Shown in pieces: positions 3,839 through 36,323 of a stretch of 47,256 bases of DNA. The notes beneath the pieces are model-generated. The model was given only the letters and a program-made list of their open reading frames with translations. It was not told the DNA's origin and did not search any database. The position numbers and the translations under genes are program-made. Source of the DNA: Neoconidiobolus thromboides FSU 785 (taxonomy: Eukaryota; Fungi; Entomophthoromycota); assembly GCA_025603075.1 (NCBI GenBank), contig MU626413.1, positions 1 through 47,256 of the forward strand, given 5' to 3'. Positions within the stretch are counted from its first letter, which is position 1, and every line of letters starts with the position of its first letter.

Positions 3839-3936
3839 GAAGATGTTTTTTTTGATTTCATTATTTTTCCATTTTTTAAGCGCTATTTGAGTAGAAAGAT
3901 TGTTAGTAAAATTCTTAAACAAAAAAATACATCCCC
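3839..3936 (-). mobile_element. MITE copy a (~98 bp, inverted orientation)
   Basis: GAAGATGTTTTTTTTG...AAAAAAATACATCCCC flanked by ATAT (3835-38) and ATAT (3937-40). Reverse complement matches the other copies. Confidence 0.85.
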
Positions 3937-4199
3937 ATATTCATTTTATTTTTTATTTTTGAGCAAATTCGAAAAGCAATAAACATGACTGCTTATAATC
4001 AGTGAAATTTCAATATATTATGTTGATATTATGCTTCAAGAGGTTTATTCTATGATGTATCCTATGCTGTATTCTGTATTGTATTCTGTGCTTATAAACT
4101 TATCGCAAATACTGATAGATGTTGGGTCTACGAAATTTGTACTAACAAATATCGTATAAGAGTTTATTTTATAAAAGTTGGGCATTTGGGTTAGAATAT

Positions 4200-4295
4200 G
4201 GGGGTGTATTTTTCGTTTAAGAATTTTGCTAATAATCTTTCTACTCAAATAGTGCTTAAAAATGGAAAAAGTAATGAAGACAAAAAAACATCCCC
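4200..4295 (+). mobile_element. MITE copy b (96 bp)
   Basis: GGGGGTGTATTTTT...AAAAAAACATCCCC with ATAT on both sides. Confidence 0.9.
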
Positions 4296-4806
4296 ATATT
4301 TTGTTATTTCTATAGATAAATAAAGTCTAGTTTGTTTGTTTTATATAGATGTACTATTTTTGAAAATAAATAAGCGGATGAGGCGGATAAGGAGACCTGA
4401 GAAGTAATATGAATATGCGTAAGCCATCTAAAGCTGTTTTTGATTGATATGAATAGAGGACACTCATTCCTATTACAAAACCTTACTATTACAAATTTCA
4501 TAGGAAATTCAATGATTAATTTTTGAAATAAAATTAAAAGTCAAATACGAAAATTTAAGTCAATGTATGGATCCTCTTTGTTATAATAATAAAGTATTGT
4601 TTATATAATACTGATTGAAACGAAAATTGTAATAGGATGATAACCGATTTCGTTATTGATTTTGTTCTTTTTATTTTTTGAATTTTTAAGATGATTTTAT
4701 ATATTTCATAAGTTTCTAAATTTGGAGTTTTATATAGAGCTATTTTGGTTAAACAATCATGAAGGTTCGCTATATTGTATCTTAACACATTAGTTTAATA
4801 ACTAAT

Positions 4807-4904
4807 GGAAATGTATTTTTATGTTCAAGAATTTTACTAATAATTTTTCCGCTTAAACAATGCTTAAAAGATATAAAAAGTGATGAAGCCAAAAAAACAT
4901 CCCC
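4807..4904 (+). mobile_element. MITE copy c (98 bp)
   Basis: GGAAATGTATTTTT...AAAAAAACATCCCC with TAAT on both sides. Confidence 0.85.
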
Positions 4905-6279
4905 TAATAATCATTAGTATATTTTACTAAGATCGAAGATCAATCTTTATATAGTAAAAAATTTGTTTTATAGTAAGGATAGATATAAAGAGTTATTAGT
5001 ATAATGTATTTGTGTAACAGAGTTACTACTAATTTTAAATATCTTGAAAAAGCTATTTACATCAAATTTGATATCAAACTGAAATGAAATAACATTCAAT
5101 AAAGATAAAAAACTTAAAACTTTTACAGAACTTATTTAGATTCAATCGTGTTTTTTTTAAATTCATAGCTATTTGATTTAATTAGGTTCTATAATAATAA
5201 ACAATAAAATACCAAAACAATAAATAATAACGATACAAATCATTAAAGTTTTGATATTTTTATAATCTATACATGTTCGGAATCATATTAATTTAAGTAG
5301 GTCCTAAAAATATAGAACTTGTAAACGGATTTAAATGATTTATATATCTTATTAGAAGTTTATGTTTATCTTTTAATCAAGTATTTAAAGCTACCATATT
5401 GGCACCTTCTTTTGTATCTTTTAAAATATATTCAAAGTGGTTGTTAGCATTGGTCAATATCAAATTGATCATTTTATTATTGTTACTATTATTGAAGTCT
5501 AACTACCTTTTTCCTTTACTATACAATTACGAATTGTAAACTTAGACTCATTATTCACTGTATTTTTTCTAGCTATGCTTAATAAACCTTTGCTACTTGT
5601 GTCTTTTAAAAAATACCTGTTATCATCCTTTTCTATTTGATATATACATTATTTCATGTGTTTTTTTATCTTTTGCTGCCAGATATTACCCAACTTTATT
5701 ATCGAAAATTGTATGCTTCTTTTTTACTTGGCTCACTTCATTATGTTTTGGTGTAGCATAAGTTTTATTGCTGTTTATTTGATCTATTTTCCTGTAACAA
5801 ATAATTATTTATATATTGTCTAAATTCAATTAAATTCAATTTGATTATATATTTATATCCCAACCTTTATTTCGTTTTTAAAGCACTAATACTAACTTTT
5901 CTATTTGGATTATTAGATTTTCCTTTAGCTACGCAACCATGTCCATTACCGTTATGCGGAAAACGAAGCAACTGTCTTGGAAACCATGAGGAAGAGAATT
6001 GGCATTTCTGGTTTAATATGACATGTAGTCAAGAAGTTAGCTGCTCAAATAATATGTTTTTAAACTATTATATAGAGCAAAAAACTATTCTTATTCATTA
6101 ATTGTGAGTATTTAAAAGTTAATTGTAACTTAAAGAGTTGCATTATGCCATTTGTATTAGATCATTCGCTACGTCTCAACATACTTTTATTCAAATTGAT
6201 TTGTCTGAAGATAACTTGTCGCAACATCATCAAGGATTTATCTATAGATAATTTCACCTTACAACTATAAAAAACATAT

Positions 6280-6366
6280 GGGGTGACTTTTGGGGATTTT
6301 GATAATTTTTCCACTCAAATAGTGCTCAAAAAGTAGAAAAAGTGGTAAAACCAAAAAAACACTCCC
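6280..6366 (+). mobile_element. MITE copy d (87 bp, diverged, internal deletion)
   Basis: GGGGTGAC...CCACTCAAATAGTGCTCAAAAAGTAGAAAAAGTGG...AAAAAAACACTCCC with ATAT on both sides. Confidence 0.75.
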
Positions 6367-7326
6367 ATATACTATATCTGCCTTAATCAGTATTTAATAT
6401 TTTTAAGCTGCATAAATATTTGCTGAACCATAGTGAATAGCATAATATCATAGCCAAACTATATTTGGGCTTTGCCAAAGAAATTTTTATTAACAATTGC
6501 AGCAGAAATTTATCTTGTGTAAAATAAGCTTTGCTTTTGTAAAAATATTAACACTGTTGTAGTTCTTTAACTACATGATCAAAGCAATGTTTTTACTAAG
6601 ATTCCTTTGAAAATTTCAAGTTTTAACTATTTTCTAAACAGCATAAAACGTGAAAAATTAGTCATCTATTACAGAAGTAAAAAACAAAGTACTAAAATTT
6701 TAACTAAGTCTTAGTTTTGAATTAACTCTAGTAATACCTCAAACTTAAAATTTAAATTTAAACCACTCAATAACTTTAATCTTTTGTTAATTCAATAAAG
6801 CCAATATTAACTAAACAATTCGAATTAATAGACCTAACGAAGCTGCATTATAAACATACATCAATTATTACCATTAAAGGAAAAGGAGACCACCATCTAA
6901 CAATCTCTCTTCTGTATAAAATCATTAAAAACAAGCTCAATCGTTGCATGCTATCTCCGATTTACTCATCAAAATTGGACTTGATAGATTTATCGAATTA
7001 ATCCCCGTTATTGGAGATATTACAACTTATATTTTATTTATAATATTAATTTTCTTAATTAAAGACTTAAATTTACCAAAATATATGAAAATAATCGGTA
7101 CAAAATTCCCCTAAAAAACTTCAACATTGTTCAACAATTACTTTTATATACCAAAATGCAAAAGGAATTATTGAACAATGTCATATAATGATTTTGAACA
7201 CTAAAAGATTATTCTCAAGTTTCTTTTGTCTAAGCAAATTCTTCAAATTTAACAAATGATTCGATTCGCTTAAGAAACTTAAACTAAAAACTTAATTTTT
7301 TTAACTTAATTTTTTAACTTTTTAAA

Positions 7327-7674
7327 ATGTTAATGAAAGCCATAGTAGATAGTACCAGACGCGTAACAAGGCCCTTAGAAAGAATTGCTGTATCAGCCTA
7401 TTCAACTCAAAAAGTGCAAAATTTGCCTAATAAACAACAAGTATTGTCGGTGTATAAACAGCTTTTAAAACAATGCCAAAAGTTTAATGGCTATAACTTT
7501 CAACAGTATGGTTTGCGTCGTACTAAGGACGCTTTTAGAAGTAACAAGGACTTGAAGGATAAACAAGAGATTATAAATTGTTACAACAAGGCTTTAGAAG
7601 ACTTAGAGGTGGTTAAAAGACAAACGCTCATTTCCTCTTTATTTGGTGCTGATAAACTAGTGATTGAAAAATGA
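7327..7674 (+). CDS. ISD11: LYR-motif protein LYRM4/Isd11 (Nfs1 partner in mitochondrial Fe-S assembly)
   Basis: VLSVYKQLLKQCQKFNGYNFQQYGLRRTKDAFRSNK...LEVVKRQTLISSLFGADKLVIEK matches the Isd11 pattern (YNFxxYxxRRxxDAF; RQxxISxxF; KLVIE). Confidence 0.88.
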   Translation: MLMKAIVDSTRRVTRPLERIAVSAYSTQKVQNLPNKQQVLSVYKQLLKQCQKFNGYNFQQYGLRRTKDAFRSNKDLKDKQEIINCYNKALEDLEVVKRQTLISSLFGADKLVIEK

Positions 7675-8549
7675 TATTAAAGTATGAATTTAAATGAGAG
7701 GTAATAGAGATTTAATATGCTTTTTTTGTTTTCTTTAAATAGATATTTTTTATTACTACTTTTAAAATTGTTGATAGAATTTAGAATTTAAAATTACATT
7801 TTTGAATTTATTTTAAAAAGTGATAAAAAACTTAGGATTAAAAGCGGATCCTATACTTATTCATTATTCTTATTTTATTTAACCTTACTGAAAGAGTTCA
7901 TTTTAAAGATCAACTAAGATCACCACATTTAATTTGGCATCATTTTTAGTATTATCAATTAAACTTAAACGCATTCATGAAGACTTAAGAATGCTATAAA
8001 CATTATCCTTTTTATTTAATTATATAGCTTTCTTGTTTTTCAAAATATCACTTCAAACATCCATAATTTTTCAATCTATTACTCGATTATATATATTAAA
8101 TCAATAAGCATATAGTGATAGTTTAAATAATTGCTTTTATCAGATTGTATTTTTTTGCTTAGTCAATCTAAAATTTTGATTTTGGGCAAATCTATAGCAA
8201 TTCAACAAAATTGGCCAAGCTATTTGTGTGGACTGGTTTATGCCATATCCAACATTGGCTCAAGATGGGAATATTAGCTGCAGGTAAAAATAGAATAAAA
8301 TATAGCCAAAGTTATTAAGCAAGCATCTGGTTTAAAAAGTCCTACTTTGGAAATGATATTGAATTCAAAACAAAATGTATTCTGATTAAAGTATATCACT
8401 ATAATACAATCGATGACAATATTCTATATGTTTAATAATGTATATAGTATATTGATGATATAACAGTTAAGCTATCGATTCTATTATACATTCATAACTT
8501 AGTGAATTAGCAGTATTTAGTAATTTTTATGTTACAACTTATCAATAAG

Positions 8550-8556
8550 TGACTCA
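8550..8556 (+). promoter_or_regulatory. Possible Gcn4/CpcA (AP-1-type) site TGACTCA upstream of GCV2
   Basis: Exact heptamer ~440 bp upstream of the ATG at 8993. Yeast GCV genes respond to TGACTC-binding factors. Could be chance. Confidence 0.3.
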
Positions 8557-8992
8557 TTTATTATATTTAATAGGAATTCAATTAATCTAGCTTTGTTGAT
8601 AAACCACTATTTGGATTTTTTTTTATATTTAAGAATCAGGTGATTTAACTAAAATTCCATTCATTAAGAATAATTGAACAATAAATCAAATTGATTTGTT
8701 CAATTAATTTCGAAATATAATTCCTAAACTTAAGTTGCATATTTAGAAAGCTAAAAAATATATAATGCTAGTTAATACTCCTTATTACCTCTTATAGTCT
8801 AAAAAATGAATCCTTGAACATTTAAATATAGAGATTATGTTTTATTTTACTGCACGGTTATTGATTAAAACGACGAATCATTTACTGAGATTATTCAATA
8901 AACCAACCATATTTTTACATCATTAATTAGTGCTACTACATAAGCCTCCTCAACTCTCAATCCTTTCTTTAACTTTCTATTTATCTTTAACG

Positions 8993-11900
8993 ATGCTTCA
9001 TCAGATCTTAAGGCAGACATTTAAGCGCAATTTAATTAGGGCAACTTTATCTCGCGTCCCTACTCTTTCTTATCCAAAATCTTTGCCTGCCTTACGTGCT
9101 CATCATACACAAGTACCGGCACCAAAAGATGTATTTGCGCCTCTCGATACCTTTGTCAATCGTCATAATGGGTCTGAAGAAGATCAAATAAAAGAAATGC
9201 TATCCGCTTTAGGGGTTGAAAATATAGAAACTTTACTTTATCAAGCTATTCCAGATTCGATCCGTTCTGAAACTCTCTCAAGTATGGATGATGGTTTTAG
9301 TGAATCGGAATTAATTAAACGTATTCGATATATCGCGGATCAAAATCAACTTTACCGTAGTTATATTGGTACTGGATATACTGGTACCATTGTACCAGCT
9401 GTAATTCAAAGAAACATTTTAGAATCTCCTGGATGGTATACTCAATATACCCCTTATCAACCAGAAATCTCTCAAGGTCGATTAGAATCCTTACTTAATT
9501 TTCAAACCATGGTAGCTGACCTTACTGGTTTACCAATTGCCAACGCTTCTTTATTGGACGAAGGCACTGCTGCTGCTGAAGCTATGGCCTTATGCTTCGA
9601 TCATTCAAGAAGTAAGAAAAAGACTTTTGTAGTTGATAAGAATTGCCACCCACAATCAATTGCTTGTATTAAGACCAGAGCTGAAGGTTTTGGTGTTAAC
9701 GTTGTAGAAGTTGATCTTAGTAAAAATGACTGGGAAGCACATCTTGGTGAATTATGTGGTGTTATATTTCAGGTAATCATTTGTTTATTTTTATATTGTG
9801 ACATGTTTATAAATTATTACAGTATCCTAATACTCAAGGAAGTATTATCGATTATAAAAAAATAGTTGATAAAGTTCATGAGGCAGGCGCACAAGCCGTT
9901 TGTGCTACTGATTTATTAGCACTTACTTTACTTACCCCACCATCTGAATTTGGGGTAGATATTGCTTTAGGTAGCTCCCAACGTTTAGGTGTACCAATGG
10001 GTTATGGTGGTCCGCACGCTGCCTTTTTTGCTTGTACTGATATTCATAAGCGCCGTATCCCAGGACGTATTATTGGTGTATCAAAAGATGCCCATGGTAA
10101 TACTGCTTATCGTCTTTCCCTCCAAACTCGTGAACAACATATCAGAAGAGAAAAAGCTACTTCAAATATCTGTACTGCACAAGCTTTATTAGCTAATATG
10201 GCAGCTATGTATGGTGTCTACCATGGTCCAAAAGGATTAAAAGCCATTGCTCAAAGAATACTTAACCTTACAGCTATCCTCTCAGCTGCTTTAACTCAAT
10301 CTGGAATCAAAGTATTAAATGGTACTTTCTTTGATACTCTAACTGTTGAATGTAATGCTAAGGAAGTCATCGAACGTGCTCAAAGTAAAAAGATTAATTT
10401 CCGTCATGTAAGTGATAACGCCGTTGGTGTTACACTTGATGAAACTGTGACTCGTTTAGATTTGCAAGATATTGTTTATTGTTTTACTGGTCATAGTGAA
10501 TCAGATTTGCTTCAAGTTGCTAACTCCATTAACGTTAGTGAAACTCAAGGCTACAAAGTACCTGAGAATTTACAACGTACTACACCTTATATGGAACACC
10601 CAGTTTTTAACTCTTATCATTCTGAAACTGAATTATTACGCTATATTTATCACCTCCAATCAAAGGATCTTTCCCTTGCTAACTCAATGATCTCTTTAGG
10701 ATCTTGTACTATGAAGCTTAATGCTACTACTGAAATGATCCCAGTAACTTGGCCAGAATTTGGTAATATTCATCCATTTGTACCTGAATCTCAAGCAAAG
10801 GGATATAAATTACTTATTGATGAACTTGAAAAAGATTTAGCTCAAATTACTGGTTTTCATTCCGTTTCTCTTCAACCAAATTCTGGCGCTCAAGGTGAAT
10901 ATGCTGGATTAAGAGTAATTAAAGCTTATCATGAATCTCGTGGAGAAGGTCACCGTAATATTTGTTTAATTCCAGTTTCAGCTCATGGTACTAATCCTGC
11001 TTCTGCTGCTATGGCTGGTATGAAAATCATTCCTGTCAAATGTGAAGCCAATGGAAATTTAGATTTAACTGATTTAAAAGCTAAAGTCGAAAAACATTCT
11101 AAGAATTTAGCAGCCATTATGATTACTTATCCATCTACTTTTGGTGTATTTGAAGATGGTATTATTGATATTTGTGAATTAATTCATAAAAATGGTGGTC
11201 AAGTTTATATGGATGGTGCTAATATGAATGCCCAAGTTGGTCTTACATCACCAGGTACTATTGGTGCTGATGTATGTCATCTTAATTTACATAAAACTTT
11301 CTGTATTCCTCACGGTGGAGGTGGTCCAGGCGTTGGTCCAATTGGTGTAGCTAAACATCTTACACCATTTTTACCAGGTCATCCAGCTATTCAAAGTAAA
11401 GCTGAACAAATTGGTCCAATATCAGCTGCTCCATTTGGCTCAGCCTCTATCTTACCTATTTCTTGGGCTTATGTTAAAATGATGGGTGGTGATGGTCTTA
11501 AAAAAGCTACTCAACTTGCTCTTTTAAATGCCAACTATATGGCTAATCGTCTTAAAGAACATTATAAAATATTATATACTAATACTAATGGTAGATGTGC
11601 TCATGAATTTATTATTGATATTCGACCATTTATTCAATCAGCTGGTATTGAAGCTATTGATATTGCCAAGCGTTTACAAGATTATGGTTTCCATTCACCA
11701 ACTATGTCTTGGCCAGTAACTAATACTTTGATGATTGAACCTACTGAATCAGAAAGTAAAAATGAAATGGATCGATTCTGTGATGCATTAATTCAAATTC
11801 GTCAAGAAATTCAATCAATCGAAGATGGGAAATATTCACGTGAAGATAATCCATTAAAGAATGCTCCACATACTATGGATATTTTATTACAAGATAAATG

Positions 11901-12093
11901 GGATAAATCGTATTCTAGAAATGTTGCTGCTTATCCAATGGCTTATTTAAGAAAATCTAAATTTTGGCCAACAGTTTCGAGATTAGATGATACCCTTGGT
12001 GATAAAAATTTGATCTGTTCTTGTCCTCCAATGTCTTCTTATGAAGAATCAACTACTACTACTGAAAAGGAACCTATTTCTGCAACTGCTTAA
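8993..12093 (+). CDS. GCV2: Glycine dehydrogenase (decarboxylating), glycine cleavage P-protein; 2 exons (intron 9773-9822)
   Basis: Mitochondrial-like presequence from ATG 8993. Motifs [23 protein letters not shown] and [15 protein letters not shown]. Removing GTAATC...TTACAG joins VIFQ to YPNTQG...[22 protein letters not shown] motif [18 protein letters not shown] is present. Confidence 0.97.
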
Positions 12094-12435
12094 GTTAGCT
12101 TATTATATATTTCAATTTTATATTACTTCTCATTTAATACTTATAAAAAGTTTAAATAAAGCTTTAGTTAAATTTTTAATTACTGTGTGTCATTATCTAC
12201 TTTTTTATTTATTAGATTTTAATATATATTTTAAAATAAAAAACTATAAGCATACAACGAATATAAAATAATAGTTTTAGCCTTTAGACTAGAGTTTACT
12301 ATTTTTAGTATTTCTACAGTTAATTTGATTGGCATTATTTCAATCAAGATTCTAAGCAATTTCAATTATAATCAAAAAAAACTATTGAGTCTAAAACTTA
12401 CATTTGTATTTTTATTGAGGCAATAAGAATAAAAA

Positions 12436-16660
<4,225 letters not shown>

Positions 16661-16803
16661 ATGAGAAGTTATTAACGCGAATAAAATTCAAGACCATTTT
16701 TTTATAATTAAAATTGAATGGAATTAAAAAATGAATTAAAATAATAATAATTATTATTATTATTTAAAACAAATTAATGTTAATATTAACCTAAAAGAAG
16801 GAA

Positions 16804-17841
16804 TTAATCTTGTAAAAATTGTTCAATTTTTTTTTCTTTTAATTTTTTAGCAATGATATCGTCTTCTAATTTAATTTGTAACTCTTGTGGTATTTGCTTA
16901 TAATCTACATCAATTTCTTCTTCACTATTTTTCAACATCATCTCTTTATCTTTTAATTCTAATTGATATTGTCTTAATGTCCTTAAACTATTTTGTTGTT
17001 CTTGGAAAGAGATTCTAGGTACAACACTATCATTTGAATCTTCTCTATTAGTTTCTAAAATTACTGAAGGTTCAACAGATATATCTAAATTACTTTCAGA
17101 TAATAATTGAGGCGATAGTTGATTATTATAATTAAATTGACGTATTTTTTTAAATGGTTGTAAGATAACAATTTTACTTAAGGTGATAATGATTTCAGTA
17201 AATAATGTACAAGTAAACTTATCATGTTTGATAATAGCTGATGCAGAGATATAAGTTAATTGCTTTTTTAATATTTTATTTTCTAATAATTGAAGTATAA
17301 TTTTCATAGCTAAAAATGGGTTTCTTTCCGCTAACAATATCATCTTTTCTTTATCTGGTATATTAAATAAACTGGTTATGATGCTCATCCAAACAGTTAC
17401 CTCTACTTGATTAAAATTATCAAATTCATAATCTAAACCTAAACTTTCTACTACTTCTTGTAAACTTTCTAAGGCTTCATAAACTCTTCTTGAATCATTT
17501 GGTTTTAATTTATACATCATTTTTTCTTTTAAGATTGCTATTAAACTATGACAAAAAGATTTTAAGGTGGCTTCATCATTGGAAAGGATCAATGAAATAT
17601 CAAGAGTATCAAAATGAGCCTTATTTTTTTCTTGAAGTTTTAAGATTGTTTGTTGAAATAATTCTAATTTATTAATAGTAATCGAAGATGTACGTTTAAT
17701 AAATAAAGTAAATAAAATTGTTAACCATAAATCTAAATTCATTGAAGTTATAGAGTATATTGAAGGTTCACCACTTAACTTTAATAATTTATTAAGGTGC
17801 TTTAATATCGAATCAGATGGAATAGTTTGTATTAAATTCAT
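16804..17841 (-). CDS. Uncharacterised protein with two CH-like repeats resembling the CEP95 N-terminal DUF5745, plus C-terminal coiled coil
   Basis: Intronless 345-aa ORF. Internal repeat LDISLILSNDEATLKSFCHSLIAIL / ISASAIIKHDKFTCTLFTEIIITL. Domain call from recalled pattern only. Confidence 0.45.
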   Translation of the reverse strand: MNLIQTIPSDSILKHLNKLLKLSGEPSIYSITSMNLDLWLTILFTLFIKRTSSITINKLELFQQTILKLQEKNKAHFDTLDISLILSNDEATLKSFCHSLIAILKEKMMYKLKPNDSRRVYEALESLQEVVESLGLDYEFDNFNQVEVTVWMSIITSLFNIPDKEKMILLAERNPFLAMKIILQLLENKILKKQLTYISASAIIKHDKFTCTLFTEIIITLSKIVILQPFKKIRQFNYNNQLSPQLLSESNLDISVEPSVILETNREDSNDSVVPRISFQEQQNSLRTLRQYQLELKDKEMMLKNSEEEIDVDYKQIPQELQIKLEDDIIAKKLKEKKIEQFLQD

Positions 17842-21330: not shown

Positions 21331-21375
21331 TCAAATATAATCAAATATAATTAAACATAATTAAATATAATTACA

Positions 21376-21455: not shown

Positions 21456-21473
21456 ATACAAATACTATTTAAT

Positions 21474-22091: not shown

Positions 22092-22466
22092 TTCGTATTA
22101 TTATTAGAAATATTATTATTTGATTTCTTGGTATATCTTTCTATGAGTTTTATATACATTTTTAAGATTAACTAATTCTTAGATCATTTCTTTATAAAAT
22201 TAATTTTAGCCAATTATATTCTTATTAAGCCACCCTTAAAATTTTTAAAAATGACTTGGGAGTGATGTAATTTGGAGAACCTTATACATTTCATTTAAAT
22301 TATTATTTTTGTCTAATATTTTAATAATCATAAGGTAAAAATAATAAGATAAAAACAATAAGATAAAATAATTTACTCAATTGTAATTAAGTATGAATTC
22401 AATAAATTTGTTTATTTTGATTCGATAGAAAAAACACATCTATTTTGTAAAGCCCCTCTTCTGCTT

Positions 22467-22901
22467 TTACTCTTCCTGTTCAAACAAGTGTATATTCTCT
22501 TCCACCCATTTTTCCATCAAATCTACATTCTTTAAATTTGCTCTCCATAATACATCAAAAACGTCTCCTAAGAATGGTATGGATCCCACCGTTGTATCAA
22601 TTACTATATTCCCTATCATTTTCCCATAAACATGTTTTGGTAAATTTAAATCTTTAGCTAAGATGATTAATATTATAGATAAGATAGAGGTTGCACCATC
22701 TCCGATAACAGGGATTAATCCGATAAGCCCATCAAGTCCAATTTTGATAGGTAAACCGGGGATAGCATCCAACCATTGAGCATAAGTTTTTAATAATTTT
22801 ATACGGGAGCGAGCTTGTTGAATAGTGATCTTCTTTTTCTTTGATGACGGTGGTTGAGGTGTATTTATAGGTTCAACTTCTCTAGATCGATTAATTGGCA
22901 T
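22467..22901 (-). CDS. DUF4112 family membrane protein, paralog 2 (tandem duplicate)
   Basis: IGLDGLIGLIPVIGD...IDTTVGSIPFLGDVFDVLWRANLKNVDL, colinear with paralog 1. Confidence 0.85.
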   Translation of the reverse strand: MPINRSREVEPINTPQPPSSKKKKITIQQARSRIKLLKTYAQWLDAIPGLPIKIGLDGLIGLIPVIGDGATSILSIILIILAKDLNLPKHVYGKMIGNIVIDTTVGSIPFLGDVFDVLWRANLKNVDLMEKWVEENIHLFEQEE

Positions 22902-24329
22902 TGTTTAGTTATATTAGTTTTATTAAATTAACAAAAGATTAATTCTTAAGTGATTTAAATTTTTAATTTAAGTTTGAAAATATTAATTAACTAGTTAAAA
23001 GTCAAGTAAGGTTTGGCTAAAATTTTGAAACATTATTCTTCACTTCTGCAATAGATAACTAATTTTCCACATTTTATGCTGCATAAAGGATAATCAAATT
23101 GATTAAGTTTTGGAATTCATAAAAGTAACTCAAATACCAAGCAATAGTTTATATCATGAAGTTAAAGTAGTACACAGCAATTGACATTTCTCATAAATCA
23201 AAATTTAAGTATGAGATATACTTTTTGCTGCAAATAGTGACTAAAGATACTTAATAAAAAAATCCTAAACATTTATGAATATTTTTATATTATTAGTTAA
23301 GACAGTAGAAGCTTTTATAGGTAAAAAATTAAATTATTTTCATGTAAATTCTTATTAGTATTACAATTACTCACCCCTGAGGATATTTTGATAGTATGAC
23401 TGTATGTTAAAATATAATAAATAATCTATAAAAAGATGACACAATGCAACTCTTCAAACAATCTTAAATCCTTAATACCCATAACTATTAAATCTAGTAA
23501 GATTTCTATTTTATATAAAAAAATAGAAACAATATTTAGTGATCTATCTTTGAGGTATCATGTATATTAAGTTACAATTGCTTATTCCCTTATCCATGGC
23601 TACATGACGACCACCTTGTAGCTATTATAATCGTAGTGAAAATAGCTACGTGGCTAGGCGGTCCTTGGTTTTGGCTTGAGTGTTAAAGATATAGCTAGAG
23701 TGAGTACAGAGTAGGTAGCGGCGATAGGGTTGAATCCACTGTGATACCCTTTATTTGTTACTGAAATGTATTGGGACGATCAAATTGAACGTTTTAGTAC
23801 TAAATCTGGTAAGGGGAAAATAACTAGTATAATATCAGAACTTATCATTTTGGTGGATTTTTTAGTGGGAAAAATAAATTATTTTAAATGCCTATTTTTT
23901 GGTTTAAAATATACCTTAGCCCAAAATCTAGTTTTTCAGTTTTAATTTTAATTTTTGATCAGTACATGGAAATGTTTTCTATCATGATTTGATTGAGTTT
24001 GTTAAAATTTATATTGTATAAGGAAAACAAAATACACCTTTTTGAAAGACATGTAACAAAAACATTTATATAAATATTTATAAACTTAAGCCTAAATCAA
24101 ATTGAAAAATTAAAACATAATTCTACTTCAAATCCACTTTATACATTGATTAACCATGACTCCATAATAAAAAAATACACTATAGAATACCATGATGCAA
24201 TGTTATCTAATCTGAGTTTATGTAAGTTAATCTATTACTTAACCATGAACAACTGGTACTAGTATAAATAAAAACTCATATCTCTTTTTATCTTTTATTT
24301 TTTAATTTTTACACTACAGTTCGATCTAG

Positions 24330-25900
24330 TGTGAAAATAATTTTCAACTGGAAGATTTAGAAAAAAAGATAATTAAAGAAATGGGAATGTATTTTTGTGC
24401 TTAAGAATTTTACTAACAAATCTTCCACTCAAATAACACTTGAAAAATGGAAAAAGTAGTGAAATCAAAAAAACACCCCCAAATGCTATACCACCTCTCA
24501 TCTAATGACAAACTTAGTTTACTCATTTGTTGTAAAAAGTGGAACCAAGTAATTGTACCAATATTATGGGAAGGTATGAGTCGAAGCTACTATAATAATT
24601 ATAGTAATAGAATCAAGAAAGCTATTAAAAAACAGGGATACTATATCAAATGTTTAAAGCTTAAGAATTATTTAAATCTACCCTTGCATTTACTAGAAGA
24701 TCCAAGCAATGTTAAATTATATACAAATTTTGATCGATGTTTAAAAAATATAAATCAATTTAAAGACTTTCTATCATTAGGTCTTACCTATACAACGCTT
24801 ATTTATGATATAACAGTTGAAGAATGTATACTTGCGAACAAAATCAATATTAAAGGGATGTTTTATTATTTGAAATACTTGAAATTTGATTACATAAACA
24901 ATCTATAATATTAATAATATCATATTTACCATCAGCAGTTACTTCATTGCTAATCAGTCGTGATGATGATGTTGAAATACTATTTTTTGAAAATTTGATA
25001 AGTAAACTTGATAATTTAAAGGTACTTGAACTAGATTATATTAGCCTTGAATTAGAAGAGTTTAACTGTTAAATCAACAATTTCCACAATTGGAAAGGTT
25101 AAGTATTGAATGTGTGAAAATAAATAAATTAGAAGAGACGTGTATAAAATTTATTAATTACACAAAGCTTAAAGCTCAATATTTCAGATTCTTCAATCTT
25201 AAAGTTTAATGAAATATCAAATTTGGAGGAGTTAACATTATTTGGTTGTAATTTAACTCATCAAATTGTAGATAAGGATACATTTACAATGCTAAAGTAT
25301 TAAAGTCATATTATGTTTATAGCACTTTATCTAAGCATCTATATTCAATATCCAATATGAAAACAACTACACTGTTGACTTTAGAGGTATCTTATAGTTT
25401 TTTACCTTTAATCAAAGAAAATTTTCTAATAAAGAACTGTAACATAACGGATATTGAATATTACAAATTTTACCTTAGAAAACGATTTTTTAAATTTTTT
25501 ATATAGATTATGTCCTAATTTACAGCACTTCGAGGTCAAAAGTTGAATTTAATATTAACTTATTACTTTTAAATAACAAAAGAGAAGTGATATTAAACCA
25601 TGACCTAGTTAATGTAGCATTTGATAATTATTATAATTTACGTTTAGATATTTTTATTGAATACATATTAAAGTATTATAAAAATATAAATTTATAAATT
25701 TATTTGAGGTTTCACATCCAAGCAGCTATCTAGCAAAGTATATAAATAAATATCACAAAATTTTTAATAGATATTGATTTTTTATTCAGGTTTTTGAATT
25801 TATTTTATGTATTGAATTTAGAACATTGTCAACCTATTATAATTTACATTTTATAAAATAACTATTATATTTGATAACATTGAAAGTCTATATAACAATA
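24330..25900 (+). pseudogene. F-box/LRR (RNI-like) gene, MITE-interrupted and apparently decayed
   Basis: F-box motif LEDLEKKIIKE-MLYHLSSNDKLSLLICCKKWNQVIVPILW spans the MITE. Downstream LRR-like fragments (LDNLKVLELDYI, NLEELTLFGCNL) are broken by stops and frame changes. 3' boundary approximate. Confidence 0.65.
24383..24480 (+). mobile_element. MITE copy e (98 bp) inserted in the F-box coding sequence
   Basis: GGGAATGTATTTTT...AAAAAAACACCCCC with AAAT on both sides (24379-82 and 24481-84). Confidence 0.9.
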
Positions 25901-26389
25901 GTTTTTAATAGAGGCTATTTTATTTTATATTTTAAAATACTATGGACACCAATGCTTTATCCTTTTTGAGTGATTGAAAAGTTACAAGAGCTTCATTTGC
26001 CAAGGTAAAGAGAGCTATAAGTTGACACTTTTGTAATAATAAAATGAAAGCAATTAAATATATAGGGAAACAGTTTTATCTGATAAAATTCTGCTTTTTT
26101 AAGAAGAAAAAGTTCATTTACTTTAGACATCAAAAGTTTTTTCATTCAAAGAGAATGGGAAAGAGAGCTATTAGAAGAAGTAAAATAGAAATGATTATGG
26201 TTATATTGAGCAATACGGTAGTCGTCAGAAAAGATTATACCTCTAATGAACGAAAATCTAATTGTTCTATATATTCTAGCTTTGATTTGAATTCTAGTTA
26301 AGATGTTCAAAAAACATAGATATCACAACTAGATTCTTTTATAATATTTCAGCTTTTAATAAACATTTTTCAAAATTAGTTTATTATAT

Positions 26390-26488
26390 GGGGTTGTATT
26401 TTTATATTTAAGAATTTTAGTGATAGTTTTTCTACTTAAATAGTGCTTAAAAGATGGAAAAAGTGATGAACCCAAAAAAAACATCCCC
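26390..26488 (+). mobile_element. MITE copy f (99 bp)
   Basis: GGGGTTGTATTTTT...AAAAAAAACATCCCC with ATAT on both sides. Confidence 0.88.
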
Positions 26489-26941
26489 ATATGAAATAAC
26501 AAATAACAACAATTGAAATATCTAAAAATGTCAATTTGAAATAAACTAATAACATAGGTATAAAGATGTAAACTTAAAACAAGTTAAGGCCAAATTTATC
26601 TTTATATCAAATACACAATCAATTGGAATCCCTTAACATTCTACAATACTGAGTTATAAAAATCCTAATACAGATAATTGCTCACAAGAAGAAGTCAGGT
26701 TCAGTTTTATACTCTGCATAAAAATTTGTGTCTTTTAAACCTATACAATTAAGTGATTTTATATTTTAAAAATAGATTAAAAGATGGTCTATGAATTTTT
26801 TTAAGTTGGGAAATACAATATATTTGAATGTAACATTTTGTAAATTGGTATCCTTTATCATTTTATGATTTGAAAAAGGCATACTAATATTAAAGTAACA
26901 ATTTACTACCTCAAAATTTTGCAAACTAAGACACAACATAT

Positions 26942-27040
26942 GGGAATGTATTTTTGTGTTTAAGAATTTTACTAATAATCTTTCTGCTCAAATAGCGCTT
27001 AAAAAAATGGAAAAGTAATGAAGTCAAAAAAAACATCCCC
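26942..27040 (+). mobile_element. MITE copy g (99 bp)
   Basis: GGGAATGTATTTTT...AAAAAAAACATCCCC; flanks ATAT / ATAC. Confidence 0.88.
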
Positions 27041-28479
27041 ATACCATTAAGGAAGTTTTTATGAAAGATTTACTAGAGGGTTACTTTTGAAAAAATTCAC
27101 ATAATCTAAATAATGACCTAATAATAAATAGGTTTTTTACTATTTAGATATATTGAGTAATGAATCAATAGTTTTGGAAACATCATGAAATTTAAATGTT
27201 TAATACAATTCCCATATTTTTCAAAAAAAAATTCATTTCATTTTTATATTTATAATAGCAATCTGAAGCAATATCTTTCCATAATATATGTAATAATGCT
27301 TTATTTCATTCCTTGAAATATAAAAGTAGACTACCTTTACTTCCATCTTATAGCTGATATGGAACTCCTTTGACTCAGCTTATTTACAAGCTTTTAGTGT
27401 CAAAGCCATCGTCCATCGTTTAGTTTAAAACAGATTATGAGTATTGGTACAGAAAGGTCTATTGTTTTTTATAATTAAATGATAACTTTTTTTTGAGGCC
27501 TTGAACCCAGATGGGGAAATGTTTTTTATTAAATAAGAAAAATATGTTTATAGAGATTCGGAGGCTACTTTGTAAGAGAGAACCTTCCTGATTTTCTAGA
27601 GAAAAGGTGAGTTGAAGTTAAGTTAACTTCATTTGGCTAAGCAATGCGCCATTCTATGTAAAGGTTAAGTGCAAATAAGTCTACATCAGGACCTTTTACA
27701 TAAAATTTCCAGCATGAACAGTAAACGGCTCAGAGAATTGAGCCAATAAAGGTATTGGTAAAGGAAGGCTTAAAGTCGAACATGATTACTTTGCAAGTAA
27801 TTGGGAGATAGTAGAAATTTGTCAATTGGAAAACTAAAAATTTGGATAAAAGCGTTAAATTAAATGTTAAGAGAGTGGGGACAGCTGAAGGAGTAATGAA
27901 AAGAAATAAAATCTAACGAAAGGCATCATAAGTGAAAAGATAAGATATATGGTTTGAATTTACCTAACTGAAATCTAGGTGTAAAAGCTGAGCAATTAAT
28001 TAGCAACTTTTAGGAGAATTTATTAGTAAAAAATGATTAACAGGGAAAATCAAAAGTAGCGTTTGTATACATTATTTAAACGTTTACATTTTATTATGTA
28101 ATTATATACCAAAAACTATTCTATTAAATACTTCAGTACAATTAAACTATAATTCTTATATCCAATTGAAAACATACAATATTTTAGTATATTTTACAAA
28201 ATCACTTTTTTATTCTTATTTTAAAATATTTTTAATCTCTAAAATCAAAACTTTGTTTAAACAAATATAAAATTTTATGATTATACTATGATATAATCAA
28301 TTTAGCAATTTAAAAAGCATTTGATTATTGAATGTTAGAAAAGTATTTATTCTATTTCAAGCTCTTTACAGTCATTTTTATAAAATTTAATCAATAGTCT
28401 TTTAATCTTAAGTTATCAAATGTTCAAAATTTAATTAAAATTTAACTTCAAAGTAATAGTTACATTATCCCTGAATTTT

Positions 28480-28920
28480 TAAGCAAAAATTAACTTTCCA
28501 CCTCCACTTTTTTTTTAATTTTTATCAGTTTACACTATTTAAAAATGTTCAAAGGCTGATTATATAAAAGTCTCTAGTTAATAAAGCAGATGTAATTATC
28601 AGTATATATTGTAATCATTTTTAACTTTTGTATCAAGTTTTATTTTAAGGCAATTTTGTCAAATTATTTTAAATGATCAAAGATACGAATAACCTATTTG
28701 AATATTACTAATTCAAACTTTGAAAGTGGTGTTTATTCGATACTATCTTCGAGCATAATAGTATCTTCTTAAATAAACTTTAATTCCAATTCAAATACTA
28801 TTATAATTCAACTATTTATAAATTGTGGTGCTTATCTGTATAATAAACTCTTTGACATATTCTTAGTATAAAATGGAGCTTTCCAAAATGTAGATTAATA
28901 CCACATCAAACCGCACTGCT
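28480..28920 (-). pseudogene. Possible second decayed F-box/LRR gene fragment
   Basis: Minus frame CGLMWY*STFWKAPFYTKNMSKSLLYR*APQFI resembles the post-F-box C..W......LW..P pattern. Many stops; boundaries approximate. Confidence 0.3.
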
Positions 28921-31112
28921 ATTATTAAAAAAACTCATTAGCGAAGTTTGATTTTATATCAAATTTTTACAGTTCTTTAGAGAATATTTTTAATTGTCGT
29001 GGGGACAGGGTAATAAAAAATTTGGAATCTGACTTTAGGTTTTGTTACCCAAACCAGTAAAATTAATACTTAAAGTGATCTTTTATTAGAAGGTTGAGAA
29101 AAATCTTTAGAGTAGAACCAGTAGAAAAAATTTATTGCTGTATTATTTTATTAGATTTTATTTAAGCCGAAATTGAAATGCCATAAAACAAAATGAATTT
29201 TAACAGGCTTGATCACTGCTGTTTATTTTCAAAAGAGCAGAGCTTTCTGCAAATTTAATTAAAACGTGAATAAATATCTGTATTTGCAGAATTCATTTGT
29301 GATGATTTGTTCTATTTTCTATTTATCAAATACAAAATGAAAATCCCAATTCATGCTTAAATTAAATTTATAGATAGCACTGCACTTTTGGAGCTAAAGA
29401 GCTGTTACCCTGTTATCAAGTCAAAATCTTAGGTTAAAATTTATTTGATTTACTTAAGCTCAAATGTGCACTAAGAACTGTTCATTTTATAGCAAAATTC
29501 AGATAAAATTAAGGATTAGGCTCTAAAAATCAAATAAACCAACAACTGACTCTAAAACTATCGCAAATTAGATTATAATAGAGATGCAACAGCTTCAAAG
29601 ACTTCTAGTTAATTAATTTGTAATAATGGTGATGATATTCTAGGCTAATTTTTAGCATAAAATAATAAGAACAAACATTAAGATGTTTCAAACATGAAAT
29701 TAGTTAATAAGTAATGAGTATGAAAACATATAAAACATTTATGTAGAGAATCCATAATTTTTTCATAGTTTCTGTTAATAAAGTGTTACCTATTTTAATA
29801 TATAACTTTCTACATCTATCTTAAATCACAAAGTTAATTAACTACTTTTATCATAAATGATGTATTACATTAAAATAGTCGAAACCCAACTTTATAATAA
29901 TAAATTCCTATTCACCTATATGCTCGTCTTATATAAATAAAACCTTAATGCTGGAAGATATTAATTTTTTTAAGTTAATAAAGCACACGGTTAATAAGCA
30001 TAAATTGAAATAAATACTTTAATATTTTAATTAGGGATTTTGAATTAACTAAAATTTTAATGATTTTAATAGAAAAGTGGGAGCATACAAAATAATTTGA
30101 TATAAAATTTGGGGAAAGTTTGGTTCGCTTATAAATTGAATAGAAAAAGGTGGGGAAGATAGGATTTTCTTAGTAAATGAGGGTATATAATTAATTATAT
30201 GCTAGTTTTATTTATCTATGAGCTAACATATTAATACATCAGCAATACATTGTTGGATTCTTATTAAAAAGAAATATTTAATATCTTGGGTATAAATAAC
30301 TGTTTGATACCAAAAAATAAATCTTAATTCAAAAATCACTCTTTAGGGGATGTGAAAAGTGATTGCATTAAGCTATATTTTATAAAGTTTAGATTCTTTC
30401 TTCAAAAAATGACAAGAATGACTACTGTTGTTATAATTAACTTTTTTAAGTATATAGAAAGAACAAACAAATAACTTATAATTTATATTGGGCAAAAATT
30501 TGAGATTTTTTATCTGACTCTTTTGTATTTAACTGAAATGAACTCAAAACGTTTTAAGTTACCAACATAATTTAACTAAAACTAATTTGCCTAATTACAC
30601 TTGATTCTTTTTACTATTAAAACTAGGTTATAAATATTTTTTTTGGGCTGGGATCTGAGGTAAAAAAATAAACGCTTTATATCCCTTGAATCATGTGTAT
30701 TGTTTTGCTAATCTAGCTAAATAGCCGCCACATAATATGTAAAAGCGATCTTTACATCCCTTTGTTAAAAATAAATTGAATGGAACAATAACCCTGATTG
30801 ATTTCTAATTATTAAGCGAAGTTTTTTAAAATCGACTTAAAGAATATCATAAAGAACTATATAATAATGACTAACATGAGATAATTATTACTTGGTGCCT
30901 TTAACTAAGAGTTATAACTTATCAATTACTCATTAATTGATGTTTAAAGTATTAAATTAATCTTTTAAGCTATTGAGAAAGTCTGTTTAATTAAAATTTT
31001 GTTAACAATAAAGTCACTTTTATTGGTGGAAATTTTGAATAAGAATTACAATGAAAGTAGTAAAATAAATTAATAATAGGGTACAAAGAATAGCCTAGAA
31101 GAGTATAATCGA

Positions 31113-32261
31113 TTAATAATCCGATTCAATTAAATCGATATAGCTATGGTGATTATTTCCGGCTGATGAGGATCCAATACCCTCATCAAAGTACATGGCT
31201 AACATATTATCTTTGTCAAACCTGGGCTCGCCAGGTAATAAGTCAAATATGGGGTTAGTTGGAGAAGAAAGGGAATGGCATGAATCTGAATAATATACTT
31301 CATCTTCAAAGTTTGATAAAGAAGCAGAGTCAATAGATATACTCAATGGAGCTTTTAGTTGAGTTGTATTGTTTGTTGTTGCTACATTTTCGTCTAATGG
31401 TTGTAGTTTTAAGAAATGAGTGCAGTTTTCTACTCTATATAATAGCTCTTCTAAGCTAATTCTATTTTCTGGGTCAATCTGTAATACATCTTTTAAGATA
31501 AGGTAAAAATCGTGCGATATTCCTAAAGTTTCATATAGGTATAATGGGTTCCTCAAATAAGCGACAAAAGCTTCATCTTCAATACAAGCTTGCTTCCATG
31601 GGTTCAATCCGCACATTACATTGATCATTATGATACCTAATGACCATACATCATTTTTAATTGTATTGAATCCGTGTCCCTTATCTTGTGATAGTATGTT
31701 ACATTCTGGTGACATATAACAAGCAGATCCACATCCATAATCATTAGAAATAATTTCGTCTGTAGATAATCCAAAGTCACCTAAACGTACTTCAAACCCG
31801 TCACCTGAAAGCATACAATTTTCAGGCTTCAAGTCACGATGATATATTCCTTTATTATGGCAATCAATAACTGCTAATATCACTTGTTTTATTAATTTTT
31901 TGTTTAATTGTATATTGTCTAATCTTTGCTGTACAGTTTGTCTAACTACAAATTCAAATAAATCCCCATGTTCGCAAAACTCCATAACAAGATAAAGAGC
32001 ATCTTCATCTTCAACAGTATCATAAAGATTGACAACATGATTTGATTCAGAAAGGATTTGATGAAAGTAAGCCTCAAGATCTTGAATTTTTCTTTCTCTT
32101 GGGTTCAAATCATTGCGTTTTAATTCTTTAATTGCTACCAATTCACCATTTGATATATCTTTACTTAAATAAATAGTGCCATTGGCACCGTACCCTAGCA
32201 TTTCTAAGACAAGATACCTATCATGTCCAATATATGTATCACCGTTGTTACTTGTTAGCAT
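31113..32261 (-). CDS. Ran1/Pat1 (Sks1/Vhs1-like) Ser/Thr protein kinase
   Basis: Intronless 382 aa. LGYGANG, AIK, HRDLKPEN, DFGLST...DYGCGSACYMSPEC, DVWSLGII and NPW are characteristic of the Ran1 subfamily. Confidence 0.9.
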   Translation of the reverse strand: MLTSNNGDTYIGHDRYLVLEMLGYGANGTIYLSKDISNGELVAIKELKRNDLNPRERKIQDLEAYFHQILSESNHVVNLYDTVEDEDALYLVMEFCEHGDLFEFVVRQTVQQRLDNIQLNKKLIKQVILAVIDCHNKGIYHRDLKPENCMLSGDGFEVRLGDFGLSTDEIISNDYGCGSACYMSPECNILSQDKGHGFNTIKNDVWSLGIIMINVMCGLNPWKQACIEDEAFVAYLRNPLYLYETLGISHDFYLILKDVLQIDPENRISLEELLYRVENCTHFLKLQPLDENVATTNNTTQLKAPLSISIDSASLSNFEDEVYYSDSCHSLSSPTNPIFDLLPGEPRFDKDNMLAMYFDEGIGSSSAGNNHHSYIDLIESDY

Positions 32262-34638
32262 TCTGTGTTGATGTTGTTAAATGCTTAAAATGACAATAAG
32301 TTTTATATCTCACACTAGCAAGAAATTAATAAATTAGGATTGATTGAGATTGAAAATTTAAAATGAAAGAGAATATAAAAAAATCTAATTGAGTTTGTTA
32401 CTATTTATATAATTTTTTTTAGGAGAGTTTTATTAAGCTTCGGAAATTTAATACCCACCCTGCATCTTATTTTTATCTTTTTTTTGGAATACCAAAAAAT
32501 CACTTTCCAAAAATAAGGGGAAATTCCAAATTTTCCTCAATCTTAATAAAATTAGGGACGTAATAATGAGCTTGGCTTGACTTTTTTGGCAATTAACTAG
32601 GGAGATTCCAAAGAATTAGCTGATGCGTTAACTCAGCTTAATTTAAAACAAATGAATGTTCCTTTAAAGTTATTTTATTGGCTCAACTTTGATTATTCTC
32701 CCTTATTGCAGGTTTCATTTGTAGTTTAGTAAGGTGTCCTAGATAATCTATTATTAAAAAGCCTAACTAGCTATTTGCTATAGTAGGTTTTTACATGAAT
32801 TAAAACAAGTATGACTTTTAAAAGCATCTAAGTTTGTTTTTTTACTGTAGATAAATAGCTATTGTACTTTTGCCATCAATTCGAGTAATAAGTGGTAGTG
32901 CATTAAGGAATATATGTAATTTATTTTGTATTTTATTATAGGTGTGTTGTATTGCTACAAAAAGAATTTGTAAGTAATTGCTAGATAATAGTTAGTTAAT
33001 ATTCTTTTATTTTATCAAAAATAACCTCTACCCCATACTTAGTGATATATTGAAGTAAGGGGCTTTTTATTTTGATTATAGAAATAATTTATTCTCTACG
33101 CTTTATCTAAAAACAAACTATTTAAGAGTTTAAGAGTGTGATTTCATCTATGATCCAACCAATAAGAGGACAAGATACTGAAATTTAACTTCTAGGCTTA
33201 TTTCTTTATTTGACTAAAGCGATTTTCTTAGTTGTTAAGTACTTGAGCCAATTAATTGTTCCTCCTCATTAGCTCTAAACCATTTATAGATTAGAGATTG
33301 ACTAAAAGACAAGAGTTGTACAGGTTGAAATGGGTATAGCGATAATTGATGGAATCATAGTTTAACTTGATATGTAAATTAAATATTTATTCAAGACATA
33401 ATAGATTTAATGTATTGAACCGGATAGTGGACACAAGTAAACCAAGCTCTTGACTTAATCATCATATTAATTTCGATTAATTTCAAAATAACTTGTACTC
33501 TATTCATTATGATCAAAAAATGTTCATGTTATGATATTAAAAAAATATTTTTTTAATTAATAAGTTTTATTTCATTTTTACATTATTTATTTTATTCACA
33601 TTTAATCACTTTTAAATCGTTTTATTACAATAACAATAGGAATTTTTTAAAAATTCAAAGTATTTTAGAACTTTGGGATAGTAGATTATGCTCTGAGATA
33701 TAAAATGGATCCATTTAATATGCTCTATATATTAAAAAGTTCCATGTTACATTAATGAAACCCATCAATTAGAGCTTTTTAAATATCTTAAAAATTAGTA
33801 CAAAATAGTCCACATACTTAAAAGCTAAATAACTAATAGCAAATTATTTCAAAAATTCCATAATAACTTGGGTGCTTGAAACAACAAGCTTTTAAATAGA
33901 TTGTAATGAGCTAGCAGCCTATATATTTAAAAAAGAATAAGCTAATTTGGGATTTGTAAGATGGCTTCTAGAGTAGACTTTTTTATTGGGCAAGAAAATA
34001 GGTAGGTTATTGATTGCAACAACAAACATTTTTTTATCTCTAAAAACAAGATATTTTTGATGTAAAAAAAATTCATCTGTAGCAACTATATATTCTTAAT
34101 AATAGGGATTTGTCCAAGAAGGGAGATTACTTTATAAACAACCTTATATTAATATATATAATTGAAGTGTATAAACTTCAATATAAACACTACTAATTAA
34201 ATATTTATACTTGCATATTATTGCTTTTAAAAAACCCCAAATTTTCATAAAAAGGCAATTTATGTGTAATAAATCAAGGTAAATATTAATTCTGGAACTT
34301 TGGTTATTTTTCAATTAACCCCTATTTTGTGAAAAAAATAACCCCAAATTTAAAACCCAGCTTTTAATCAATCCTAAACAAATTCATTTTTTATATTACA
34401 ATACCTGTTTAAAAAGAATGGTTTTAGGCTAAGGTTGAGTCGAAGTTGGTTTTAAAATACTATCATCATAGCTTAGTCCTAAGTGCCTGTAACAAAATAA
34501 CCAAGGGCTTTAATACGAGATTATCGAGTTTTTGAAAAGACAGCAATTAGTATTTAAAATAGCAATCCATATAGGGACTAACATTTAGCGGAACCATTAA
34601 CAAATAAACTTATCTTAAAGTTTGTATTAATATTATAT

Positions 34639-34737
34639 GGGGATGTATTTTTTCATTCAAGAATTTTGTTAAAAACCTTTCCACTTAAATAACGTTTAAA
34701 AGATGGAAAAAGTAATGAAATCAGAAAAAACATCCCC
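34639..34737 (+). mobile_element. MITE copy h (99 bp)
   Basis: GGGGATGTATTTTT...AAAAAACATCCCC, best-preserved TIR pair, ATAT on both sides. Confidence 0.92.
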
Positions 34738-34786
34738 ATATAGCCTATTTTTTATAAAAGTTAGCTTAACTTAATAAGCTACTTGT

Positions 34787-34880
34787 GGGGATGTGTTTTT
34801 TTGTCTGAATTTTACTAACAATCTTTTATTCAAATAGTGCTTAAAAATGGAAAAAGTAATGAAATCAAAAAAACATCCCT
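34787..34880 (+). mobile_element. MITE copy i (94 bp), 49 bp downstream of copy h
   Basis: GGGGATGTGTTTTT...AAAAAAACATCCCT. Flanks do not match each other (TTGT / TCAT). Confidence 0.85.
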
Positions 34881-36249
34881 TCATGATAAGAATATTATAA
34901 TAGTTCATACTTAAAGCACGACTTAAAGTTCGATAATCATAATTTGTAAAAGCTTTTTGAAAAAGTGGTTATAGCCTAGACGTTACATTCAATATATTAT
35001 AATCATTATAATTCAGAAACTTGAAAATTACCGCTTTTATCTATAGCAACCAAGTTTTTCCTGCAATATATTTACAGTGGTTATTATTTAAATATTTTCA
35101 GTAAATATTGCTCAGTGATAACACAATTGAATATTTGAAAATAATTTCAACGATAATCTAACGGTTCTTAACAAATTTCTAATTATTAAGAAATTTGCTT
35201 TTGAACGCAAATGCATAAATTTTGAACAAAAAACATACAAAAACATAAAAATGCATCATTATGTGGTACCTGTTTCGATCATTTTTTCTATTTTTGTTTT
35301 TATTATTCGGTTATACATACATAAATCTATTTATTTTATAGCCTTTTCTCACTGTTGAGAGCCACTAGAAGTTGTTGTTTAAACCTTTTTTAAGATGTTC
35401 AATTGTATCATTACTATCGATAATATTTTTTTGAAGATACTAATAAATTCATTTCATCCCTATTTTATGCATCTCAAAATTTACCTAAGCTCGACTTTTT
35501 AATATAATGTTGTATAAACAATCATAAAATAAAAGATTAATCAATAGTTCTATTTAATTACATTACATAGTTTAGTGTATGAAATTTATTTTGCCTTCAG
35601 CTTACTCTTATGACTTGCTAAGGTTATTTACCTCCTAGATTAAGGGGACTTTTAGTTATTAATTAAACATCAAAATTTTAAATTTTAGCCTTAGCCATCA
35701 GGTTATTCCAAGTAATTAAAATAATTTTTTTTTAAATTTAATTACTTTGAAAACTTCAAAAAATATTTTATTTTATTGATTTTTAACAATATGGACTAAA
35801 GCTGAAATACCAAACTAAAGTGATGCCAATATCCCCCAAGTCCACATTGCTTTCAATATCTCCTATTTTATCTTATCAGTTAGTTTTAAGAGCGATTATA
35901 AAATTGAAAGTTGATTAAAATTTGGAATTTAAAACAGAAACGAAACTGCAAAAATTGCATATTTTTTGGAATTTAAAAATACCTTATTTTAAAACCGTTA
36001 TGATTAGGGGATGTTTGACATTTTTTTGACCAATATTAGAATAATGCTAACAAAAAATATTGCTTTTAACTTTCCTCTCTAAAATGACTAATAGTACTTT
36101 GAAAATTAGTTTAAAAGACAACCGAAAATATAAAAGGTTGGGCTAAGAAGTTTAAAAAGTCCCCTAATTTTTAATTCTATGATAAGACATAATTAGTAGT
36201 GAGCCGAAATTTTTAAAAAGGGCATCTACAATGATGCACAAATCTATTT

Positions 36250-36323
36250 GGGGAGAGTTTTTTGGCTTCATCACTTCTATTTTTTAAGGGTTATTTGAGT
36301 AGGAAAGTTCGTATTACTTCTTA
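36250..36323 (-). mobile_element. MITE copy j (partial, diverged, inverted)
   Basis: GGGGAGAGTTTTTTGGCTTCATCACTTCTATTTTTTAAGGGTTATTTGAGTAGGAAAG is the reverse complement of the consensus 3' two-thirds. Confidence 0.6.

Follow-up and report, generated by a model that had tools for sequence, protein, structure and literature searches.

The question raised by contig MU626413.1 of Neoconidiobolus thromboides FSU 785, an insect-pathogenic fungus of the Entomophthorales, is what kind of element has scattered a short sequence with inverted ends so densely along it, and which enzyme could have moved that sequence. The stretch analyzed here is the entire contig (47,256 bp; assembly GCA_025603075.1), hereafter the window, which has a G+C content of 25% and carries intron-split eukaryotic genes such as those for glycine dehydrogenase, a DEAH helicase, and a protein kinase. 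The analysis confirmed that the repeats are copies of a 98-bp noncoding miniature inverted-repeat transposable element (MITE). Very probably they form a MITE family of Sola2 cut-and-paste DNA transposons, for which the transposase would have been provided in trans by a 2.3-kb element family, one decayed member of which lies at the contig end, or by a close sister of that family.

A repeat scan of the window was followed by an nhmmer search with a profile made from six MITE copies, which recovered ten members (E values from 1e-9 to 1e-26) and one 28-nucleotide (nt) fragment, corresponding to one copy per 4.7 kb. Eight of the ten are full length (94 to 99 bp), while copy d has an internal deletion and copy j has a rearranged or lost 5' tip; the nine full and about two partial copies counted in the initial annotation match this inventory. 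The consensus starts with GGGGATGTATTTTT and ends with AAAAAAACATCCCC, so that its ends read GGGG...CCCC, and its terminal inverted repeats (TIRs) match at 13 of 14 positions and continue to pair, more weakly, to about 22 nt. The consensus and imperfect 14-bp TIR described earlier therefore stand. The uniform length is too small for any open reading frame (ORF). Being short and noncoding, with TIRs, a duplication of fixed length, a high copy number, and ends shared with a transposase-bearing element, the repeats have the features of a MITE, and the earlier inference of a nonautonomous element is borne out. It should be mentioned that the consensus folds as a hairpin (-21 kcal/mol) and has an A-run near its 3' end, as might be expected if it were not a transposon at all and instead a short interspersed nuclear element (SINE), a piece of some larger repeat, a structured RNA, or a regulatory motif spread by recombination. 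Such an origin is extremely improbable, because the hairpin is simply the pairing of the TIRs, the repeat is a discrete unit with a fixed-length duplication, and copies sitting within other transposons carry duplications of their own. Scanning the window for Rfam families and tRNAs gave no match, which makes a SINE or a known RNA unlikely.

The 4-mers flanking the copies had been listed as ATAT in a, b, d, f, and h, TAAT in c, and AAAT in e, and had been taken for a true 4-bp target-site duplication (TSD) lying outside the element; the list proved to be exact. In the window, a 4-mer recurs at MITE spacing by chance with a probability of 0.012, which puts at least seven recurrences among nine copies at about 1e-12. 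We then examined 33 two-ended copies, drawn from the window and from five further loci of the assembly (L001, L002, L003, L005, and L006), and found that 23 of them have a perfect direct repeat of 4 bp where the profile places the boundary, compared with 0 of 33 for control 4-mers displaced by 6 nt. Correction by eye for indels at the tips added four more perfect cases (27/33). The 23 duplications comprise ATAT (14 cases), AAAT (4), ATTT (3), and TAAT (2), and therefore 21 fit AWWT and the other two are TAAT.

Since a palindrome such as ATAT might belong to the TIR, the cases with other 4-mers were sought specifically. Were ATAT the outer part of a palindromic TIR longer than the one described, only TA would be duplicated, or nothing, and the repeats would be Stowaway-like MITEs of the Tc1/mariner superfamily; the self-complementarity of ATAT and its presence beside most copies would fit this. 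We give that possibility almost no credence, since nine copies have the nonpalindromic AAAT, ATTT, or TAAT, always as direct repeats (9/9) and never inverted (0), and copy e has no TA at its junction; copies c and e, together with seven copies in the other loci, refute it. The flanking 4-mers are therefore a true TSD of 4 bp with a preference for A-W-W-T, as had been claimed. The same direct repeats of AAAT, ATTT, and TAAT exclude Tc1/mariner (TA duplication), the 4-bp length excludes PIF/Harbinger (TWA), and TTAA, the duplication of piggyBac and Kolobok, occurs in 0 of the 23. Duplications of 5 to 8 bp were absent from the nine two-ended copies of the window, the only copies tested for longer ones, which excludes hAT with its 8-bp duplication.

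Apart from the copies themselves, the only solitary MITE terminus in the window is the one at 46402, which opens a decayed element of Sola2 type that is truncated by the end of the contig. Its sequence from 46402 to 47256 recurs at 86 to 91% identity in all five fetched loci (5/5), and two transposase N-terminal pieces, in different frames, are present at 46686 to 46916 and 46907 to 47254. Beyond the window, five copies of this partner element were found, four of them with both ends (L001, L002, L003, and L006), and the two-ended copies without inserted MITEs measure about 2.3 kb (2,363 to 2,439 bp). In L001, L002, and L003, the three copies in which TIR and flanks were read directly, the TIR GGGGTTGTCYGRATTGGTTTCA is present at both ends, and the TSD is ATAT/ATAT in the first two and ATAT/ATAA in the third. 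There is no second gene in this compact element. The "hypothetical proteins" annotated at L001:10001-10477, L002:10001-10896, L003:4568-5026, L005:6001-7126, and L006:788-2027 (K502DRAFT_350935, _349508, _348451, _348650, _353801, and others) are decayed Sola2 transposase fragments and not host genes.

The group to which the partner belongs was examined with a 216-residue catalytic fossil (L003:5318-5965), which was searched against a library of 1.84 billion cluster representatives and gave 778 matches at an E value of 1e-3 or lower and 271 at 1e-10 or lower. Among them are DFA_08389 of Cavenderia fasciculata (P0125) and PPL_04538 of Heterostelium album (P0137), the current names of Dictyostelium fasciculatum and Polysphondylium pallidum, whose Sola2 transposases are printed in the supplement of Bao and Jurka 2013 (PMC3627910). 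Three motifs of 10 to 12 residues from each of the published Sola2_DFa-2 and Sola2_PPa-1 transposases occur verbatim in P0125 and P0137, respectively. By BLASTP, the fossil and P0125 share 37% identity over 143 residues of the catalytic core (E value of 1e-22, or 1e-15 library-wide), including the DFK, W-D-x3-HFKS, and HGKS-x-VD motifs found in dictyostelid Sola2 transposases, and an upstream RSTF-x-K-x2-PS...TD-x-C-x2-C block can also be aligned. In an alignment of 15 sequences, D40, K42, W122, D124, H128, F129, H160-G-K162, and D166 are invariant, and the D-D-D triad (D40, D124, and D166) is fully kept in the fossil. Sola is reportedly a DDD family (Bao et al. 2009). Four transposase pieces scanned against Pfam gave no match, which fits the absence of a Sola family from Pfam (PMC5751038). 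The reference transposases in these comparisons were those of published Sola2 elements.

The assignment of the MITE family to the Sola2 group is thus supported, and the deciding evidence is the partner element, whose TSD and terminal octamer are those of the MITE and whose transposase fossil is homologous to Sola2 transposases; that homology holds for the partner and not for the MITE itself. The initial annotation had reached Sola2 through the GRG...CYC termini and the 4-bp TSD, and here the affiliation stands while the argument is not diagnostic on its own, because AWWT duplications and GG starts are also found in Sola1 MITEs, and the PPa families of Sola2, unlike the MITE, start without GRG. 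The termini GGG...CCC are compatible with GRG...CYC and comparable to the GAG...CTC of DFa-2, and published ends vary, with TGTT/GTT in PPa elements. Published Sola2 elements have 4-bp duplications of AWWT, ATAT, AAAT, and ATTT (PMC3627910).

By comparing the MITE with the partner element, we found that they have in common the terminal octamer GGGGNTGT and a GNTTTCA block at positions 16 to 22. The 3' ends match at 33 of 41 nt (z of 5.7 against shuffles) and the 5' ends at 27 of 42 nt, and of 1,000 shuffles, 4 equaled or exceeded the combined score of the two subterminal regions. On the 3' side the similarity is end specific, and in the 5' subterminal region, compared in L001, the M5-E5 score was 22 versus 23 for the cross comparison. 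Several observations count against the Sola2 explanation with the 2.3-kb family or a close sister as the transposase source. Taken alone, the 5' similarity is weak (z of about 1.8), and TIR positions 9 to 15 are T-rich at both MITE ends, where all long copies read CYGRATT at both of theirs; the true progenitor may therefore have been a sister family of the sampled 2.3-kb elements and not that family itself. Among the partner copies seen, none has an intact transposase, all of them carrying stops and frameshifts, and no transposition event was observed. In addition, when Logan contigs from four DNA sequencing runs (with three organism codes among them) were placed on positions 3000 to 8900 of the window, contigs broke inside copies a to d in all four runs (4/4), which means that these copies are present in all.

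The mismatch at positions 9 to 15, where both MITE ends are unlike all six element copies, could mean that the mobilizer was a different Sola2 family with T-rich TIR interiors, or a Sola1 family, given that Sola1 MITEs make AWWT duplications too; such a family would be unsampled or lost, and the 2.3-kb element would be its cousin. This seems unlikely in view of the octamer, the GNTTTCA block, and the 33/41 match at the 3' end, all of which the MITE and the 2.3-kb element share in the correct end-specific orientation. Furthermore, a search of the N. thromboides genome for other Sola2 proteins, and so for a second Sola2 family with a better-matching TIR, returned only the same 2.3-kb family.

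According to the favored explanation, mobilization in trans by the 2.3-kb family or its close sister, the MITE would keep only the ends recognized by the transposase, namely, the GGGGATGT tips, the GNTTTCA block, and roughly 40 subterminal nt on the 3' side. A Sola2 DDD transposase, supplied by the family seen at the contig end or by its close sister, would bind these shared termini, excise the MITE, and integrate it elsewhere. Integration would proceed through a staggered 4-bp cut at A-W-W-T, mostly ATAT, whose fill-in during repair would produce the observed duplication. Each insertion would leave two fresh ATAT targets, so later copies could land beside earlier ones, and the pairs and clusters of MITEs would be explained by these new targets. 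The family may have grown to thousands of copies, nearly all of them outside gene calls. At L003:7846-8043, two MITEs stand tail to tail with a single shared ATAT, and at L001:9407-9520, a MITE stands head to head with a 2.3-kb Sola2 element, again with a single shared ATAT; in both pairs, the element that arrived second appears to have targeted an ATAT generated by the first. MITEs are also inserted inside partner elements, each with its own ATAT duplication (L001 10648 and 11831; L005 5151 and 6828).

The MITE family is old, with a mean Kimura two-parameter distance to the consensus of 0.13 (range, 0.04 to 0.27; 203 transitions and 42 transversions) and a mean pairwise identity of 81% among the window copies. 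The presence of copies a to d in all four runs indicates that these insertions predate the split of the sampled isolates. In the empty-site check at the same copies in the four runs, no bridging contig was seen, and the joints listed (15 of 354) were repeat-to-repeat cross-matches. No polymorphism was seen, which is no proof of its absence. With its copies diverged and every transposase copy seen broken, the family looks mostly or wholly inactive now. The sampled sequence (123 kb) contains 37 MITE copies, partial ones included, and in each of the four runs, the summed contig depth over the MITE was about 1e4 times that of a single copy, a rough measure and not a copy number; the copy number is probably in the thousands. 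In the fetched loci and in the window between 21 and 42 kb, all but one of the MITE copies situated outside Sola2 elements lie outside called genes. Copies e to j occupy two stretches for which the public annotation calls no gene, 22901 to 31113 (8.2 kb) and 32261 to 36555 (4.3 kb), and an ORF at 24447 to 24908 begins within copy e.

The Sola2 elements of dictyostelids (DFa-1/2/3 of Cavenderia/Dictyostelium fasciculatum and PPa-1/4/5 of Heterostelium/Polysphondylium pallidum; PMC3627910) likewise have short TIRs and a 4-bp AT-rich TSD. However, they are 10 to 15 kb long and carry Fanzor genes, whereas the partner in N. thromboides, a fungal host, is only 2.3 kb and the 98-bp MITE is the dominant form. 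The Sola1 MITEs of insects (Sola1_NA in Bombyx mori and Rhodnius prolixus; PMC3845634) resemble the present family in being nonautonomous, in their 4-bp AWWT TSD, and in their GG-initial TIRs, but they are 194 to 709 bp long, have unrelated TIRs of 28 to 36 bp, and depend on a Sola1 transposase, while the partner here matches Sola2. Similar to the N. thromboides MITE, Stowaway (Tc1/mariner) and Tourist (PIF/Harbinger) MITEs are tiny, have TIRs, are moved in trans, and are abundant in gene-poor intergenic stretches, although their duplications are TA or TWA instead of 4 bp.

Sola2 MITEs have already been cataloged in insects, and the family described here is a new record of the known Sola2 group in a fungus, neither a new system nor a new mechanism. 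A 2017 survey of fungal cut-and-paste transposons reported one Sola2 case, in Aspergillus flavus, and none in Zoopagomycota, and it regarded Sola groups as likely horizontal arrivals in fungi (PMC5751038); the remark in the initial annotation that the group is rarely reported in fungi agrees with that single case. Our literature search found no paper on transposons of N. thromboides. The closest named relatives of the transposase are from Furculomyces boomerangus and Smittium angustum (Harpellales, insect-gut fungi; P0011 and P0024), with 40 to 44% identity, and Sola2 may be widespread in Zoopagomycota, to judge from these homologs. As a tentative proposal, Sola2 could be an overlooked resident of zoopagomycete fungi (Entomophthorales and Harpellales), or could have spread by horizontal transfer among fungi associated with insects and the hosts of these fungi, with one N. 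thromboides MITE having reached about 1e4 copies, or 2 to 3% of the genome, partly through ATAT targets of its own making. The Sola2 group probably supplies the most abundant repeat of this entomophthoralean genome, and relatives in two genera of gut fungi widen its known host range. The MITE and its Sola2 family need masking in genome annotation, and the compact 2.3-kb element with its 98-bp substrate is usable for studies of Sola transposition. We know of no reported transposition assay for the Sola group.

Table 1. Positions of the MITE copies and of the 2.3-kb partner elements in the window and in the other loci of the assembly
Feature	Locus	Position	Strand	Length	Flanking 4-mers	Remarks
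MITE 3'-end fragment	Window	3806..3833	+	28 nt		Faces copy a, fold-back
Copy a	Window	3839..3936	-	98 bp	ATAT/ATAT	3' end decayed, CCCC to CTTC
Copy b	Window	4200..4295	+	96 bp	ATAT/ATAT	
Copy c	Window	4807..4904	+	98 bp	TAAT/TAAT	Nonpalindromic, direct
Copy d	Window	6280..6366	+	87 bp	ATAT/ATAT	Internal deletion near 5' end
Copy e	Window	24383..24480	+	98 bp	AAAT/AAAT	Nonpalindromic, direct
Copy f	Window	26390..26488	+	99 bp	ATAT/ATAT	
Copy g	Window	26942..27040	+	99 bp	ATAT/ATAC	3/4 matching
Copy h	Window	34639..34737	+	99 bp	ATAT/ATAT	
Copy i	Window	34787..34880	+	94 bp	TTGT/TCAT	Duplication no longer readable
Copy j	Window	36250..36327	-	~78 bp	AAAT after 3' end	5' terminal ~10 nt apparently inverted in place
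Partner element, 5' part	Window	46402..47256	+	855 bp	ATAT at 46398-46401	Starts with GGGGCTGTCC...; decayed, cut by contig end
Partner copy	L001	9507-12005				Two MITE insertions inside
Partner copy	L002	9521-11883				
Partner copy	L003	4286-6724				
Partner copy	L005					5' part interrupted
Partner copy	L006					Match over nearly whole length

Details at the ends of two window copies (Table 1) are as follows. At 3806 to 3870, the 28-nt fragment and the 3' end of copy a oppose each other in a fold-back with 5 nt between them. At the 5' tip of copy j (36320 to 36345), the sequence reads ...AAAAAAATGGGGTATAT where ...AAAAAAATACATCCCCATAT is expected, which looks like an inversion in place of the terminal 10 nt or so, or like a second truncated copy abutting the first.

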